A DNA stretch of 63,826 bases, filler included, from Lenisia limosa (Eukaryota > Protista > Breviatea), in assembly GCA_001655205.1 (NCBI GenBank). It is 7 parts of 7 records of this genome, joined end to end, with 100 filler letters (N's around TTAATTAATTAA, not from the genome) between each part and the next. Parts side by side here need not be neighbours in the genome. Positions count along the whole stretch, not along the records: positions 1 to 21,198 come from LPNZ01007845.1; 6 more parts are not named here. The stretch is one strand, 5' to 3'. The notes under the pieces are model-generated. The model made no database searches. It was not told where the DNA came from and was given only the letters and a program-made list of their open reading frames with translations. Below, one piece after another: positions 301-20,183 of this stretch. How positions within the stretch are numbered: the first letter of the stretch is position 1; each line of letters starts with the position of its first letter. The position numbers were made by a program, and so were the translations under genes.

Positions 301-3300
301 TCATAGAAAAGTCCTGGAGCACCAAGTTGTCGCCAACTGAGCAGTTAAATCAAGGTATTCCGACTGGACATTCATACGGTAAATTGGCTCTCGACACGGC
401 TCTTTGCACACGGATTGGATTACCTGGCTGAACTTCATAATTGAGTAAAGGTCCACTACTGAGTCAAATATAGTCACCAAGATGCCTCTTTTAACAAGCT
501 TACAACCAAAAGTCAGGAATAATTCAAGCTTTCCACAAACAGTTTCTTCTGATTTCTGGGTCAATATGAAAGCCTTGACTGAGGGCAGTGTTTATGACAC
601 ACTGATTACAATCCTAGAGAGTTCAGAAAGTGCCAATCCGGTCATATTTGGTGTTGTTGTGTTGCCATTCAAAGGGCGGCTTTTACCTACGGAGGATCTC
701 ATAATGGCAGGCTTAGTCGAGATGTCGATTTGAGATGCAGGAACATACTCACCAGTCTAAATAGGTAACTTTCAACCGAGCTCAAAATGACATCTGCCCC
801 AAATTCCGTACATACGCTGAGAATCAGGTTCGTGAAGAGCAAAATGTCACTCTCCCCAACAATGTAAGGCCTCACTGTCGTGTCTGCGAAGAGTCAGATA
901 CTGATAAGGAGACGGCACACTGACTCACCTATATGAGCAATGGAGAAATTGAGGAACTTCTCTGGTTCGACCTACAGATAGCAATAAATGAAATAATAAT
1001 TCAAGTCAATAGAAGTCCAGTTGATACCTGTACGGTCACAGTGAACGGGGAGACAATGTGTCCGACAAAGAGGGAAGAACTACAATATGAAACAAAAAAA
1101 GGGAGAAACAGCACAGTGCCCATGCAAGTGCCTCACCCCCAGACATTAGAGACAAAGAGTAGTCACCCGCTTTGGTGTCGACAACAAAGGAGGTTTCTTC
1201 AAAGCTTAGGATGTAGCCGTAGGGCTTGTTGTCATGAGGCTTGATGGTGCATGTACCCGAATTGAGGGAATCTAGAGAGTCACTAACAAAATGCTCTCAT
1301 TATTCTGGAGTGCTTTCACATACTTGCGTTTTGGTTGCCCCAAACAGTCATTCGAAAGATGGAGTTCAGCAAAATATCCCCTGGTGGTAAGATGAAGAAG
1401 GGCACCGATTTTGGATCAAATGCTGCAGCCATACCAGTGTCTCCGGGCCAATACAGCTCAAAAACAGGCTGGATTGGGAATGCTACTCCAGGGGCCACGG
1501 GTCTAAAAAGTCAAACGAAGCAAAAAGAAGCATCTAGCCATCTAGAATACTAGAAACGGCCTCACGTGATTGGTCTGCTAACAAGCCTAACAACACCATC
1601 ACCGGTGAGGGTGTAGCGGTGGTTAGTGTACAGGCAGCTGTCCTTGTCGATACTATATTGGATACACACGGCAAGAGTGTACTAAAATGTCAAAAGTGCA
1701 CCCTGGACAACAAACATACCTCCTCAAGGAAATAGCCATTCTTCTGTAAACCTCTCATCTCAACAGAGTAATACTGCTCGTTTGTGAATTCTAAATCGGG
1801 TAAGTTAATCTGCCTTCCTGTATCAACCTCACCAGAGGTGACGGTGTTGTATGTTGCCAGGTGAACGATTTCGTGAGGTTTCACCGGAATTCCCATCACA
1901 GTCAGCTTGAGATTAGGGACAAACAGTCCCGATGATGTGACGTTGACACGATAAGGGCCGTTTATAGCGTTGGCTGAGGGGTTGAACAAGTTCTAAACCA
2001 TCAGCGTTCAGCCAGAGAGTTCAATACCACCATCAAACTGAACCCTCCCACAAAGTCAATTTCTTCGCAAAGCTGAACTTTGTAGTTTGATTTAAAGCGG
2101 TTCTCCAGAAGCACTGAATGTCTGAAAGTGTCAGTACTCTGTATGCACAATGCCAAGACCCAATAGAAAGGCCCACAGACAGCACGTCAAACCCCAGAAT
2201 GAACGAGGTTTTCCAGTCGTAGTTCTGGTTTTCACCGCCATTAATCGTAAAAGACACCTGTAGTGTGAACGGACCGCTCAAACACGTGACCCCAACCGTT
2301 GAATTCGTCCAAGAGCTGGTTTGCGGTGTCATTGAAACCTCCACCTCCCTGACCACATTAGAGGTTCACTCAAAAAGTGATGTCACATACTGGTCAACAG
2401 GCTCAAGAGCGCCGCTTTCCGATATCCCAAGCTCAAAGTATGTAATGTGGCTGATTTGATGTGCTTCTGGCCTCATATCTGAATAGTCACATCTACAACT
2501 TATGTTGGTTCAATCAATTAAGATCTTTCTGGGTATTCAATCACATAATCTTGGGGGGGGGGGGGNNNNNNNNNNNNNNNNNNNNNNNNNNNNNNNNNNN
2601 NNNNNNNNNNNNNNNNNNNNNNNNNNNNNNNNNNNNNNNNNNNNNNNNNNNNNNNNNNNNNNNNNNNNNNNNNNNNNNNNNNNTGACGGTGTGTGAACTT
2701 CATCGGGATTGTCACTGGAGGTGGTCAGGTCCAATGGTGCAGAAGGGAAAAAAAAACTGAAATCCCCTCAGATGCGAATAAAACTTCACTTCGTTTCAAA
2801 AAAGACTGAATTTCTCGATAAATCTTCGAAAACTATCGATATTTTTCCGATCTTTATCGAAATGAAGGGAAGCCCTTGATGCGAAGTAGAAAAATCCTCG
2901 TTTTGGATATGAAGCCACACCCATTCCAAAACCTCACATTGGCTGAAGTAGTCCTCGTACGTCATCCATGAGTCTCCAGGACGCGGTGTTGGGTCTCCTT
3001 CTGCAACACCTCTATTCTGATAAGAACAGACGGATTTGAAAAGTCGCAAACACAATGAAAATTGACGGGTCCAAGAAAGATTGCTCCGATGATGACCAAA
3101 AGTGCTCTGTAATGGTAAGCGAACAGTTCTCACATCATGATACTAACCTGAGTTTACAGAAAAGTTGAAACTGGCTTCAGTCTATACAAGTAAGTGTTCA
3201 ATCTTCTTCATAGGCAAAGCACAAACTATCCTCCCATCCTCCCATACCCCTTCAGTACTCAGGCAATCGATTATCTTGAACGTGGCAATAATGAACATAT

Positions 3301-8309: not shown

Positions 8310-9745
8310 CTTAGACACAGAATACCAGAACCTTTTAATTGACTGTCATTCAATCATGGTAGGGGAGAGGCAACGTGTAGCTGCCATGATTTTTTTGACA
8401 CTCTGGTCATTTCCTATCATTCTGCTGAACAAACAGGCAAATTTGCTCAAGGCAACCCAAAATGGAAACCTTGCCAGCATTTATAACTTCTTTGATAATG
8501 GCGAGGATATAAATTATTTACACCCGCCGCATCAGGTACGAAGCTTGTATCCAATACCTTACGACTTATCCTTAAGGTCAATCTTTCTCATTTTGCTCTG
8601 ACAAAAGGTCAAGTTAATTCATTCAAAGCCCTTCTTCTCCTTGGTGCTGATATTGACAGAGTAATAGTAACGGTAAGAGGGATCTTCGAATAGAGGGACT
8701 AGAGTTTGTAATTGTGTAGAACCAGCTCAACTCCCTCATATATCATGCAATCAAAACGGGCTACTTGAAGTCATTCTCCGTCTTGGAGCACCCGCGACTC
8801 ACTGAACTGGCAGTAGGTTGTGCGACTGATTTGTAGCAAATGGTTCAGAACTCACTGTGTTAGAATACGCGCTGAATTTTAATGTGAGACAAACAGATCA
8901 GTCAGTTCAAGAAGCAAGGGTATGCAGGAATGATTATTTCAAGATCTACCCTACCTGACAATTTAGGATGAGTACCGAGTATTTATTTACATCCATACGA
9001 AGATAAACACTTCGACGAACACGGCAAAGTTCTTTGTCAGGTTGGTTCGACTTAAGGGTACAAAAGTAATTCTCTGGATAATACTGTAGAATTTTCCTGT
9101 AACAGCCTTCCAATATGCCATATGCCTGAAGAGGTTTGATGTATGTGCTCAAATGGTCAAACGTGGTGCAATGGTTGATGCCAAGTTCTCAGTTCCTTAT
9201 ATCGAATTTGAAAATGTGTGTCTGACTGAACCCCTTTTCTTATTATTTAGCGGTATAAACCTCTTTGTGATGAGTTTCATCAAATGATATGATATCTCCT
9301 CTTGAGGATTTCTTGGAAATGGCATTAAAGATTGAGAAGAGTAAGGTGGATGATGTACATCCGGTACAATAAAAAAATGATCTACCCACCCGTTATGGTG
9401 GGAGGTAATATTTAATTTAGTGTTATTAAAGTTTCATCATACCTTGTCTTTATAATATCACTCTACCTGATTATTTCACAATGGACTAGAGGCTAATGAA
9501 TAGGTCTTGTTACCCTCTCCAATTTGCACATGAAAATCGACACCATCAAAGAGTTTCCTCTGCTCGGTTTGTGGGTATTCCTTGGGATCATTCATTCAAA
9601 AGCGACTGAACGTTGATATAACCACCTAGACAATGAACAAGTACCACAGCTGAAAGGCGAGTCAGATATTAAAGCTGTTCAAACCATTGCTGATAACCTT
9701 GATCACATAAAACATTTCCAAGAGTCAAAAGAAGAAATAATATAA
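8310..9745 (+). CDS. Ankyrin-repeat-like coding exons; possibly the 5' part of the RZ-finger gene
   Basis: Spliced exons read ANLLKATQNGNLASIYNFFDNGEDINY, SHFALTKGQVNSFKALLLLGADID, LIYHAIKTGYLKSFSVL and TAFQYAICLKRFDVCAQMVKRGAMVDA. An in-frame TAA lies at 9743-9745, but a donor just before it could continue the frame into exons at 9770-10500. Confidence 0.6.
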
Positions 9746-10712
9746 ATATTACACAACTGTTGAAGCTGTCTTTCCGTATTCTTGCCTTACACACCACAGA
9801 AGGGCAAGACTGAACTTTATCATATTGTTTCCAATGAGAATGGCGAAAATGACTGGATCAAAGTATGAGTTGTTTTTTGTTGGGTTCGGAAAGTTTATCA
9901 TCCATTCCAGAAAAGCAAAACAATTTATTGATCTGACCGTGTTGTAGACCCTCATTGAGTGGAGCCAGGACCCGGTACAGCGTCGTTCTGCAGACCTGCC
10001 ATCTTTCGGCAACAATCAGGTGCGGCTCTCAAACCTATTCAAGAACTTATTACCATACAGCACCGAGTTCTCTTCTCCGAAGCCGTTGACTGTGCCTTCA
10101 ACCAGGCGCTCACTGATGACGCTGTTGTAACTAAAAACAATGGCGTCACCCTTCTGCCTGCTAAACTTCCTGTTGGCTGGGCTGTTGATATGATAGTGCT
10201 TGTATTATACAGACTATAATATAATAAAATATTTGTAAAAAGTATACATTTATACATGTATACTATATGTATGAGGACCCATCTTTCACACAGGCTGTAT
10301 TTTCACCATCCTAGCATCCATTCTGGTCAGCTATGGGCCTGGCGATGGGGAAATGCTTCAAATCAGGTGTCGGTATCAAGATCCCTATGGCCCAGGTGAG
10401 CTTCTCCTTCACTTGCTAATACCAATAGATTGGGTGGGCATATTCTTCGAACCCGCAAAAGACAATGAACCAATCAATGAAGGATCTTTCTGAGCTTATT
10501 ATAGGTAACTGGTACTGAATTATTGCATGAATTATCAGATTATGATGCGATTTATTGCTATTTTTATTTTCCTAACCAAATCAGAGTACGACCAGCCATA
10601 TGCAACTTGAGTGAGGGGAGGGGAGGGGGGATCAACTCGAGTGAGGGGAGGGGGGATTATCCAAGGTTATTCTGGTGATTTTGGCCGAATAATGCCACTA
10701 ATGCCACCGTAG

Positions 10713-11784
10713 ATCCAAAATGTTCTCCAATATGAAGGGGAAGAACTTGAAAGCCTTCTTCTTGAGGAGCAAAATCTTCAGGGAAAATACGTCACTGTCA
10801 ACAGTATGCCTGGAATGTCCCCTCATATGTAGGCAGCAACATCCACACCCTCCTCCGTAGACGTCTGAACATGATCCTTTAGGACTGTTCTGCCAATCTC
10901 AACGCCTTCACAATGGAATTCGAGTGGGAGGGGATTCTACCCATTCTTTTGTCAATGCCCTCACTTGATCGTCTAGGCGCTCAGTTGGACCCACACTCTC
11001 CTCAATGGTCACTTTAGTAGGAAAGAACGTTTGAGGATAGGAAAGTGTATTTAATGTTTTTGCGGCTATTCTGCTTATCGCCGAATGATAATTATCCAGT
11101 CTTCTTCACGGCTTTGCAATGACCGAAATGGCAAAAGTAATGGTTGGCGTTCCCAGGCATAATGTAGAGAGACAGCTAACATATATCATATAACAGTATA
11201 CTACTATTATTTCCCTTAAGAGAATAACAATTTAGAACAAGGCTGCAGAGGCTGAGACCAGAAAAAAGGCCTTGGAAGAAGCAAAAAACAGGCAGGTTTG
11301 TCCTATCCCACGTTAAATGTCTGTTTCTGACTCTTCAGGTGGCTGTTGACCTCATGGTCAAGAAGGTTTGTGAGTACACTATTGGGATTAACAAACAACG
11401 TAGATCGGCCCAGGCAGAGGATTCCGCTGTGCATGTGGAAACCCCTATTTTGTTGATGCCTGTGGAGGTGAGATAAGAAGATATAAAAACAAGTCACATT
11501 ATATTGTTTTTTCTAACAGATTGCAGGCTATCAAATGTAACAACTGTCACAGAGTAAGCTGGTACATGACAAGGGGTTACTTATTCAGGCAATTCGTATT
11601 TATCGTTGATACATTTGTTTAGTGTTTTGTTTGCGACACTTTACCACTTTGGTATCTTCTCTTGTGGTGATATTTGAAATTGATCCCCCAGATGCTTGGA
11701 GGAGGCAACCATCGTCTCAATAATGACCAGCATTATGACCCTGAACTTGGCCAAATGGACCACTCCGCCTACCCTGTTTCCTAG
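10713..11784 (+). CDS. 3' exons of a protein ending in an RZ-type (RNF213/ZNFX1) zinc finger
   Basis: Exons 11404-11471, 11520-11553 and 11692-11784 give RCACGNPYFVDACGGELQAIKCNNCHRMLGGGNHRLNNDQ, stop TAG at 11782-11784. Upstream are helical exons (IQNVLQYEGEELESLLLEEQ; NKAAEAETRKKALEEAKNRQ). The 5' end is unresolved. Confidence 0.75.
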
Positions 11785-11998
11785 ATGAAAGGAAATCCTT
11801 TGTTGAATAATGGATTATTTGTGATCGTCAGGGTGTTGAACTCACATTGTTTTTTATATTGCAATGGTCATTAATCTCAGAGGACTTCTTCCAAAAAAAC
11901 TTATTCAGAGATGTATTTAAATAGGAAATACGGCTTGGGCTCAGAGGCCGCCAACACAACAATTGGAAATGCACAAACAGAAGACATGACAAAAATGA

Positions 11999-13064
11999 TC
12001 AGAGGATTGTGCACTTCTTCTTCTTGATATGGTCAGGTACAGTGAACGCCGAGAGAATAGCTGTGTCAAAAACGGTCTTGATGTTGAACTGAGACTTGGC
12101 GGAACATTCAACAAAAGCGGCTAGATTATGCTTCTGTTGCATGGCTTGGCCTTGGAGGTAGGTCAACTGGAGGGTCAAAGATAACTCTTGCCAAGGGAGC
12201 AGCGTGTTAGAGATCCCCCCTTCATACCGCATGGTAGCCTTTCTCCTCGAGAACACGCACAATGTTGGGGTCATCGCGAGCGTCAGTCTGAAAGAGTAAC
12301 ACTTGGGATAATCATCGGCGTGACAATTTGATGTTTCAACGCAAAAAACAAGGGGCATGGCAAACCTTGGTACCAACAAGCACGATGGGGATCTCGGGGC
12401 AGTACTGGCGGACTTCTGGAATCCACGCATGTTCAACATTCTCGAGAGAGGATGGGGAGATAACTGGGCGGTGAGTGAGAGAATAGATTAAGGAGACCGC
12501 ACTAGTGGCAGAACAGCAAGCTCACCTGAGTAGCAAAGGACGAAGCAGTCAGTGCCGGGATAAGACAGAGGGCGAAGGCGATCGTAGGTATGCTGGCCAG
12601 CGGTATCCCAAAGACCCTGAAGCGTCAATTGTGCAGAAGTAATGAAACCATCAAAACAGCCTTCAGGCAAAAGCTTACAAGCTTGACAATGCGTTCGGTT
12701 CCATCGAAGTTGGCCATCACGCAACAGGCGTAGTTATCAAAAACCTACAGGGGTAAAGCAAAGGAAACATCTTGGGCTAAGCAAAGTAGATTATATGACG
12801 CTGAAAAAACCTCTGAAAAAGACGCTTACAGTAGGTTGATAAGACTCTTCGAACGAGTTGTCAGCGTAGGTTCGGAGGAGAGAGGTCTTCCCGACAGCAC
12901 CGTCACCAATTGCAACGATCTTGCACTAAATGGTCAAGGTGGAAAAGAAGGCCAATATTTCAGAAAGACAAAGCAGTAAGCAAGTATACCTGAATAACTC
13001 CACTAAGATCAACGTTCTGAGCAACACGGCGGTTGGCAGAGTTAAGAGTAGTTCGAGGAGGCAT
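11999..13064 (-). CDS. Rho-family (Rac-like) small GTPase, 7 exons
   Basis: ATG at 13064. Motifs: [16 protein letters not shown] (G1), YQPTVFDNY (G2), [19 protein letters not shown] (G3), VLVGTKTDAR (G4), FVECSAK (G5), polybasic CAAX end KKKKCTIL, then TGA at 11999-12001. All introns are GT-AG. Confidence 0.96.
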
Positions 13065-18706: not shown

Positions 18707-20183
18707 TCACATCCTTTTACTTTTTAAATACTCTACTGTCGCCGTGTTGCCCATGTCTTTTGCAAGCTCTTCAGCTGTTACACCCTAAAGCGGTGAACAG
18801 ACCATCTAAAGTTCCAAAAGCTTTATTGAATGCCGCTCAGTTCAACAAGTTTTAGGCCCTCAAACATAGCTATCTTTGAAATTGAGATCCGCTCCTGCTT
18901 CCACCAAAAGTTGGACCATTGGAAGATACCCACCACCAGCAGCCATAATGAGGGGGGTTCCCTGGAAAGTTAAACAGTTCTTGCTGTATAAACAGCCCGC
19001 AATTGAATAGAGCCTACCATTTCACCCTCTAGTATTGAGAACACAGCCGACCATTTCACCCTCTAGTATTGAGCACACAGCCGACAATTTCACCCTCAAG
19101 TATTGAGTACACAGCCGACCATTTCACCCTCTCCATTATTGACATCAGCGCCATACGCCACGAGAAGCTCAGCTATCCGCACTCGATTATCGTTGTTCTA
19201 TGATAGTAAAATCTCTACTGCTATTGGGCTGCAATGATATTGAGTTAAAAGCGTCCCCTAAAGGAAGCTGAATCAGAAATTTAAGCACACCATCTTACCT
19301 GATATTCGCAAATGGCAAACTCGGTCCTTCGACAGAGGCTCACACAATGTAGTGCTGATTCACCCTGAGTGGATAAAGGGATAGTGATCCTTTACGTTTT
19401 GGCTTGTAAATATAATAATTCAATGCCTGAAGTGTTCAAGAAGAAACAATTAAAGAAAAGGTTGAAAATCTCCACTAACCGATTTATCCTTCACGTTGAC
19501 TGCCGAGTCCTTTTCCAGTAGCTTCTTCACCCCTTCCAAGAATCCTGCGCGGCATGCTGTCATAAGTGGGGTGGCACCCTAAGCAATGAAGTGGTCAGGC
19601 AAAGTGGAAATAGTGCACTCATGGCCACCATGTAGAGGCTCACATATTCATCAACAGCGTTAACGTTTGCGCCATACTCAAGCAGAAGGTCAAGGGGGCC
19701 TGTCAAACAGTGGATGCAGGAGAGGTGGAGGGGGGTGGCAAAGCCGTTCTGAATTGTTATTGCTAAGACAGAACAAGCAGAACAAAAAAAGCAATCCATT
19801 GTTTCAAAAACAAGTGCTAACAAAAACATCGACTGGAAAATGGCCATTCATGGTCTATTATAAAACTGCACCCACATCAATCTGAAATTCTGATTTGCCA
19901 TCAACATCAGACATCGTTGCTAGTAACACCCGGATTCCAGGCACATCATTGTCCACTACTGCCTGGTTCAGCCGATCCGCTAGGTGAAATTTTTTCTGTG
20001 AGTCAGCTGCAATTCACAAAATGTTAACAATGGTATCGTATTTATGACTCTACTTTTTACATCATACCACTTTATAAAAGTGTAAAATATCATTTTTCAC
20101 GCAGTGAAACGGCAAGTACGCATGCATACCCTATTTTCTTCAGTCTCTTTAGCCGCTCTGGAGCCTGGTGGAGGCTTTTTCAT
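18707..20183 (-). CDS. Ankyrin-repeat protein (about 5 repeats)
   Basis: ATG at 20183 (MKKPPPGS...). Repeats: ATPLHLSCIHCLTGPLDLLLEYGANVNAVDEY, GATPLMTACRAGFLEGVKKLLEKDSAVNVKDKS, GESALHCV...IAELLVAYGADVN, GTPLIMAAGGGYLPMVQLLVEAGADLNFKDSY, GVTAEELAKDMGNTATVEYL. Stop TGA at 18707-18709. Confidence 0.85.
19017..19132. repeat. 34-bp tandem repeat, about 3.4 copies
   Basis: Unit CCATTTCACCCTCTAGTATTGAGAACACAGCCGA starts at 19017, 19051, 19085 and 19119. Confidence 0.95.

Follow-up and report, generated by a model that had tools for sequence, protein, structure and literature searches.

An RZ-type zinc finger in a short, possibly disabled gene of Lenisia limosa

The locus and its gene model

The window analysed here is a stretch of 63,826 nucleotides (nt), filler included, joined from seven parts of the Lenisia limosa genome assembly GCA_001655205.1, of which positions 1 to 21,198 come from contig LPNZ01007845.1 (C7845). 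On the plus strand of this contig, the interval 8310-11784 carries two ankyrin repeats near its beginning and a predicted zinc finger of the RZ type, as in RNF213 and ZNFX1, at its end. Our tentative reading, at a little under even chances, is that 11119-11784 forms an independent small gene for a lysine/glutamate-rich (K/E-rich) helix and an RZ finger, that this copy is frame-broken, and that the ankyrin repeats are part of a separate gene.

The assembly was scanned as a whole (49 Mb in 11,727 contigs). Coding potential was scored as codon log-odds trained on 1093 codons from actin, Rho and ankyrin exons of the assembly, on which scale random open reading frames (ORFs) average -0.31 per codon (standard deviation 0.2) and the training exons 0.28. 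The model proposed for the RZ gene would yield an intended product of about 95 codons from six micro-exons, and its score of +0.16 per codon was the best of three plus-strand gene models in the interval.

The possible first coding exon (11119-11136; ATG, six codons, donor aaa/GTAATG) was placed by a manual phase-consistent chain and is the weakest part of the model. It would be followed by a K/E-rich helical exon of 20 codons in phase 0/0 (11236-11295; acceptor tttag/, donor cag/GTTTGT), scoring +0.25 per codon with a z of 2.7 against random ORFs, and by a putative hydrophobic and basic short helix of nine codons (11339-11365; acceptor cttcag/, donor aag/GTTTGT; +0.63 per codon), in which a Val would lie 14 residues ahead of the first finger Cys, the position of Ile1835 in ZNFX1. 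The finger itself is spread over exon A (11413-11467, donor gag/GTGAGA at 11468), exon B (11520-11553, in the same genomic frame as exon A, donor aga/GTAAGC) and exon C (11692-11784, acceptor cccccag/), the last of which adds a 22-residue tail and the stop TAG at 11782-84.

The RZ finger

All 33 finger residues listed in a preliminary description of the locus were found on the plus strand in one genomic frame (11428-11472, 11521-11553 and 11692-11712). The first part (11428-11466) reads Cys, Ala, Cys, Gly, Asn, six residues, Cys, Gly, the second (11536-11547) Cys, two residues, Cys, and the third (11698-11712) Gly, Gly, two residues, His; given one residue across the first gap, the spacing is that of RNF213 and ZNFX1. 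Exon A thus holds the first zinc Cys (11428-30), an extra Cys (11434-36), Asn at the position of the His ligand (11440-42) and the putative catalytic Cys (11461-63) with its Gly (11464-66), and ends on one base of a split codon, and exon B holds the zinc knuckle Cys 11536-38 and Cys 11545-47. Counted from the first Cys, the zinc ligand set of RZ fingers is Cys, His (+4), Cys (+20) and Cys (+23); here the three Cys are kept and +4 is Asn, leaving the set incomplete, and the extra Cys at +2 may stand in for the His. The putative catalytic Cys at +11 is followed by Gly, and the GG-x2-His motif ends in a His at +32 (11710-12), the putative general base, which lies in exon C in the RZ frame. The C-x-C replacing the His ligand and the retained central Cys could be read as first described.

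Exon A alone matched the Pfam family PF20173 (ZnF_RZ-type) with 20.5 bits and an E-value of 3.7e-4 over positions 8-31 of the 54 in the hidden Markov model (HMM), below the cut-off of 27; against the whole 49 Mb assembly the E-value was 0.02. Exons B and C are too short for stand-alone scoring with this profile. The second-half motif C-x2-C-x4-GG-x2-H, reached through a canonical intron (11554-11691), did not arise once when the downstream 333 nt were dinucleotide-shuffled 3000 times.

The only other true RZ match in the assembly, on contig C9703 (L001, approximately 880-1320), scored 33.6 bits, above the Pfam cut-off. Like the finger studied here it has the C-A-C-G start, the catalytic Cys and the C-x2-C, but it differs in having an intron after finger residue 6, G-N-x2-N for GG-x2-His, and the finger in an internal exon rather than the last. 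Since the C-A-C-G variant stands at both RZ loci, the exchange of C-x3-H for C-x-C is best regarded as a trait of the lineage and not as noise. Further PF20173 matches on C5477 and C8820 were rejected as RING-type C3HC4 fingers. Judged by its sequence, the predicted RZ-like finger is real, and the call of an RNF213/ZNFX1-type RZ finger in the preliminary description is sound, agreeing in spacing, in the profile match of exon A and in the shuffling of the second half.

The frame conflict within the finger

No donor in the region is stronger than that at 11468, and an acceptor with a pyrimidine tract lies at 11519. Enumeration of donors and acceptors places between them an AT-rich, canonical GT..AG intron of 52 nt (11468-11519). 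Its removal sets exon B one base off the frame of the finger and leads into an unrelated tail up to a stop at 11786-88, which costs the finger its second zinc knuckle and its catalytic His; canonical splicing at these sites does not bring the parts of the finger into a single mRNA reading frame. When all GT, GC, GA and AT donors were combined with all AG or AC acceptors at this intron, the canonical spacing was restored only by GA(11472)..AG(11519), a non-canonical intron of 48 nt. This is the join (GGE/LQ) by which the last three exons had earlier been said to give the finger: the residues are indeed all encoded in one frame, but joining them takes an intron that starts with GA at 11472.

A GT..AG intron of 27 nt (11493-11519) would be in frame with eight extra residues and was rejected as shorter than any inter-exon gap in the myosin genes of the assembly; a U12 intron of the AT..AC kind was rejected for its wrong spacing and lack of consensus. 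In those myosin genes, the gaps between exon matches with abutting HMM coordinates are 38-59 nt, so an intron length of 41-52 nt is nothing unusual for this genome. The intron 11468-11519 is free of stops in frame.

Codon scores in exon B were 0.01 per codon in the RZ frame versus -0.57 in the shifted frame, and in exon C 0.23 versus -0.37. This preference in both exons indicates that the RZ frame evolved under coding constraint and that the defect is either recent or not real. Two control genes, a minus-strand Rho-family GTPase (12002-12930) and an actin gene on C8530, showed clean GT-AG splicing with consistent phases and introns of 60-113 nt. As neither contains a conflict, assembly indels appear to be uncommon, and the conflict in the finger looks like a defect of one base, from a newly arisen pseudogene or null allele or from an error in the consensus. 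Contig C7845 was 100% identical to NODE_203 (36.9 kb, coverage 31) of the metagenome assembly ERZ3820729 in ENA; because this is the same assembly, a null allele or young pseudogene cannot be told from a one-base consensus error. Because GT-AG splicing does not join the finger in frame, calling it an active ligase lacks support.

The frameshifted product (11428-11788, plus strand) stays open to 11788 and starts with C-x-C-x8-C-x2-C, which could form a knuckle of four Cys. Coincidence is the probable reason; an alternative frame would stay open over 43 codons in about 9% of cases.

Upstream gene models and searches for further domains

The predicted ankyrin gene (8356-9372, plus strand) was assembled by splice phases from an ATG at 8356 and exons at 8437-8535, 8577-8672, 8720-8812 and 9307-9372, and its stop TAA at 9370 is overlapped by an AATAAA at 9368. 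Exons 8437-8535 and 8577-8672 carry the 33-residue ANK repeat signature and matched designed ankyrin proteins with E-values of 1.4e-4 and 3e-8. The ankyrin repeats described at 8.3 kb are hence confirmed for these two (8437-8672), while exons 8720-8812 and 9108-9251, also taken for ankyrin, gave no match against the same kind of proteins; Pfam Ank models matched none of the candidate ankyrin exons of the interval. The predicted middle gene (9496-10219, plus strand) is a phase-0 canonical chain of exons 9496-9570, 9800-9862, 9948-10019 and 10061-10219, with a stop at 10217 and an AATAAA at 10223. Its exons have no relatives in Pfam, PDB or sequence databases with queries of exon size. The two models scored -0.11 and -0.03 per codon, respectively.

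Reading the splice phases by hand, we could not connect the ankyrin exons to the finger through canonical exons in phase; the chain is interrupted at 8812/8837, at 9745, around 10396-10491 and at 11467/11520. The earlier statement that no obvious intergenic gap separates the repeats from the finger was not supported: between them are AT-rich troughs and, at 9368 and 10223, AATAAA signals next to in-frame stops. Three complete small plus-strand gene models each fit canonical signals, and the upstream ankyrin repeats most likely belong to a separate gene.

No helicase or ATPase domain was detected by Pfam in plus-strand ORFs of at least 60 aa over the 8 kb upstream of the interval, nor in the candidate exons scanned inside it, and an AAA_12 profile scan of the assembly gave no match on contig C7845. 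The reported absence of ATPase and helicase motifs is borne out, and the AAA or superfamily 1 (SF1) helicase nucleoside triphosphatase (NTPase) module which the giant RNF213/ZNFX1 class has in the same polypeptide was not found. Among all candidate exons and ORFs, the Pfam matches were limited to exon A (RZ), the Rho gene and an ankyrin exon, the latter two on the minus strand.

Searches for relatives used exon-sized queries, which have little power, and blank results do not make the gene unique. A PDB sequence search with the RZ ORF and the finger of its paralogue returned chance zinc fingers only and neither RNF213 nor ZNFX1, and word searches with the exon-bearing ORFs were blank, as expected from the length window. 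The RZ ORF found only low-score bacterial clusters in the ESM Atlas, and a degenerate DNA scan of Joint Genome Institute (JGI) metagenomes for the exon A peptide gave no match. HMMER found no relatives of ORF 10275-10490, which has a low codon score, lies beyond the AATAAA at 10223 and is probably non-coding.

Neighbouring features and other observations

The Rho-family GTPase gene (12002-12930, minus strand; Pfam Ras) is convergent with the RZ gene and bounds its 3' end, the two stops being about 215 nt apart. It is intact, with six GT-AG exons, introns of 60-85 nt and a CAAX end. In the public metagenome annotation it appears as a prokaryote-style ORF of 276 aa running past the TGA stop.

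The stretch 10603-10653 (plus strand), between the second and third gene models, holds a G-rich unit (…GAGTGAGGGGAGGGG) as two direct 21-nt copies with a spacing of 30 nt, which may be a regulatory or low-complexity element. A translated motif …FLDKSSKTIDI… marks a short dispersed repeat at 2697-2876 (plus strand), which occurs on four unrelated contigs in both orientations, the other copies lying at L001 (about 1600-1680), L002 (about 850-1030 and 2100-2340) and L004 (about 28-100); it is probably an element resembling short interspersed elements (SINEs) or miniature inverted-repeat transposable elements (MITEs).

A canonical ankyrin-repeat exon of another gene lies at 19563-19847 on the minus strand (Pfam Ank, 21.6 bits). 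A first look at the 49 Mb assembly gave 648 Ank_2 candidates (e.g. on C9088, C10917, C7162, C1201 and C3799), a very large expansion, and many of these devote an exon of about 99 nt to each 33-residue repeat; in the C9088 gene that was read, the introns measure 60-72 nt. Elsewhere in the assembly, a full-length Metazoa-type signal recognition particle (SRP) RNA (C10005:14640-14924, minus strand; 130 bits against a gathering score of 70) adjoins a multi-exon myosin gene (C10005:16181-20433, plus strand), and the actin gene on C8530 is animal-like. Both point to an animal as the probable source, and a human origin was dismissed because of differences in intron size, in the metagenome source and in the structure of the actin and Rho genes.

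Interpretation

Taken as a small RZ gene with a broken frame, the locus is most simply seen as an allele or pseudogene disabled very recently, with a one-base consensus error as the alternative. In the RZ module of RNF213 and ZNFX1, ubiquitin passes from the ubiquitin-conjugating enzyme (E2) to the Cys and then onward with the help of the His. The present finger keeps the three zinc Cys, the catalytic Cys and the GG-x2-His, and the extra Cys of its C-x-C is the likely fourth zinc ligand. A canonically spliced mRNA would code for the helix and the finger's first half and then run into an unrelated tail. If the intended product were made, some 35 residues of K/E-rich helix with a hydrophobic stretch at the end would precede the finger, whose Cys (11461-63) would, by analogy, take ubiquitin from an E2, with the His (11710-12) acting as general base. 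Simple activity of this kind is opposed by the missing zinc His, by the lack of an E2-docking module such as the C-terminal domain (CTD) of RNF213 or the Miz domain of ZNFX1, and by the broken frame. A link of the RZ gene to defence would be an analogy.

Several points count against a small frame-broken gene at 11119-11784. All exon borders were placed ab initio, and NODE_203, the sole public contig found, comes from the same assembly and is no independent copy for the single base at issue. The six-codon first exon with its ATG at 11119 is weak, and the coding-like ORFs 10713-10802 and 10883-11008 could be further 5' exons, although they could not be chained here. Adjacency of stops and AATAAA is a weak signal, since chance alone would put about three AATAAA into 3.8 kb and the hexamer includes a TAA of its own, and it would be unusual for an animal to have three multi-exon genes, each of about 100 codons, in succession. 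A retained-intron product is also possible, with a loop of 16-17 residues inserted after the catalytic Cys.

The gene may instead be intact and encode a working stand-alone mini RZ protein, the conflict being a consensus error or a minor allele, or being bypassed by the GA..AG splice or by intron retention. We consider this unlikely, but the intact catalytic and zinc residues of the second half, the codon use in favour of the RZ frame, the stop-free intron and the exact canonical spacing given by GA(11472)..AG(11519) all agree with it, as does the in vitro activity of the isolated ZNFX1 fragment. The GT at 11468 is however the best donor in the region, and GA donors are extremely rare; the 31x SPAdes-style assembly and the two clean control genes speak against an error, and the finger lacks both an E2-docking domain and the His whose counterpart, H1853, is required in ZNFX1. 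A larger gene that escaped recognition, starting at about 10.7 kb or earlier and without the ankyrin part, could have the finger as its 3' end or have left it as a decaying remnant, but this appears improbable: the upstream coding-like ORFs, the shortness of the proposed ATG exon and the internal finger exon of the C9703 paralogue fit such a gene, but the two ORFs were not joinable in phase to 11101 or 11236 and had no Pfam match, and a crude dynamic programming parse, dominated by its penalties and not relied on, gave no better upstream path.

About as doubtful as such a longer gene, and if anything a shade more so, is the single compact ankyrin-helical-RZ ligase over 8.3-11.8 kb that was originally proposed. 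Its pieces all lie on the plus strand, two real ankyrin repeats stand at the start of the interval, and the majority of candidate exons look slightly more like coding sequence than random ORFs do; against it are the four chain breaks, the intervening stops with AATAAA and the middle ORFs without relatives, and three small models fit the interval where one protein had been described. A chance cysteine pattern in place of an RZ finger would agree with the sub-threshold Pfam score of exon A, the absent His ligand and the lack of a pairwise RNF213 match in PDB. It is nonetheless very improbable in view of the genome-wide E-value of exon A, the independent result for the second half and the C-A-C-G variant in the only other RZ-type match of the assembly. 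Our preference remains, tentatively, with the separate small RZ gene whose copy here is frame-broken.

What is new here is a predicted small RZ gene without an NTPase and with a C-x-C ligand swap; the RZ finger itself is known. That a free-standing protein of about 95 residues, made up of a ubiquitin-binding helix and an RZ finger with C-x-C replacing C-x3-H, exists and is expressed seems to us distinctly unlikely. If it did, it could be a minimal transthiolating ubiquitin ligase (E3) or a carrier of the ubiquitin thioester acting in trans with other ligases, and the RZ module would be an independent evolutionary building block and not peculiar to RNF213 and ZNFX1. Such a natural helix-plus-finger mini-protein would offer a convenient, pared-down system in which to study RZ transthiolation and ester-linked ubiquitylation, and would also inform the assembly history of the giant immune ligases. 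Occurring twice in one organism, the C-x-C for C-x3-H swap is a natural experiment on the range of zinc ligands that the fold accepts. Since the copy looks broken and no relatives are known, its value is that of a lead and not of a result.

Comparison with RNF213 and ZNFX1

The RZ finger of human RNF213 is formed by C4505, H4509, C4516, C4525, C4528 and H4537. The present finger resembles it in the spacing of the first Cys, the catalytic Cys, the C-x2-C and the GG-x2-His, in the predicted helix directly upstream and in its best Pfam family, ZnF_RZ-type. It differs in having Asn for the zinc His and an extra Cys two residues after the first, and the predicted gene has neither the dynein-like AAA core nor the RING or the E2 site of the CTD; its intended product would have about 95 residues against about 5200, with a frame that is broken under canonical splicing. 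In both RNF213 and ZNFX1 an NTPase module controls the RZ finger.

The corresponding residues of ZNFX1 are C1849, H1853, C1860, C1869, C1872 and H1881, together with a ubiquitin-binding helix that includes I1835, and the H1881N exchange abolishes the His-dependent step. Compared with ZNFX1, the present gene lacks the SF1 helicase, the NFX1 fingers and the Miz/RING-like E2-binding domain, and has lost the equivalent of H1853, which the isolated ZNFX1 RZ fragment requires for its activity in vitro. The two are alike in a C-terminal finger after a helical or coiled-coil segment and in a hydrophobic residue 14 positions before the first Cys, and the isolated ZNFX1 fragment provides a precedent for an RZ module that works alone in vitro.

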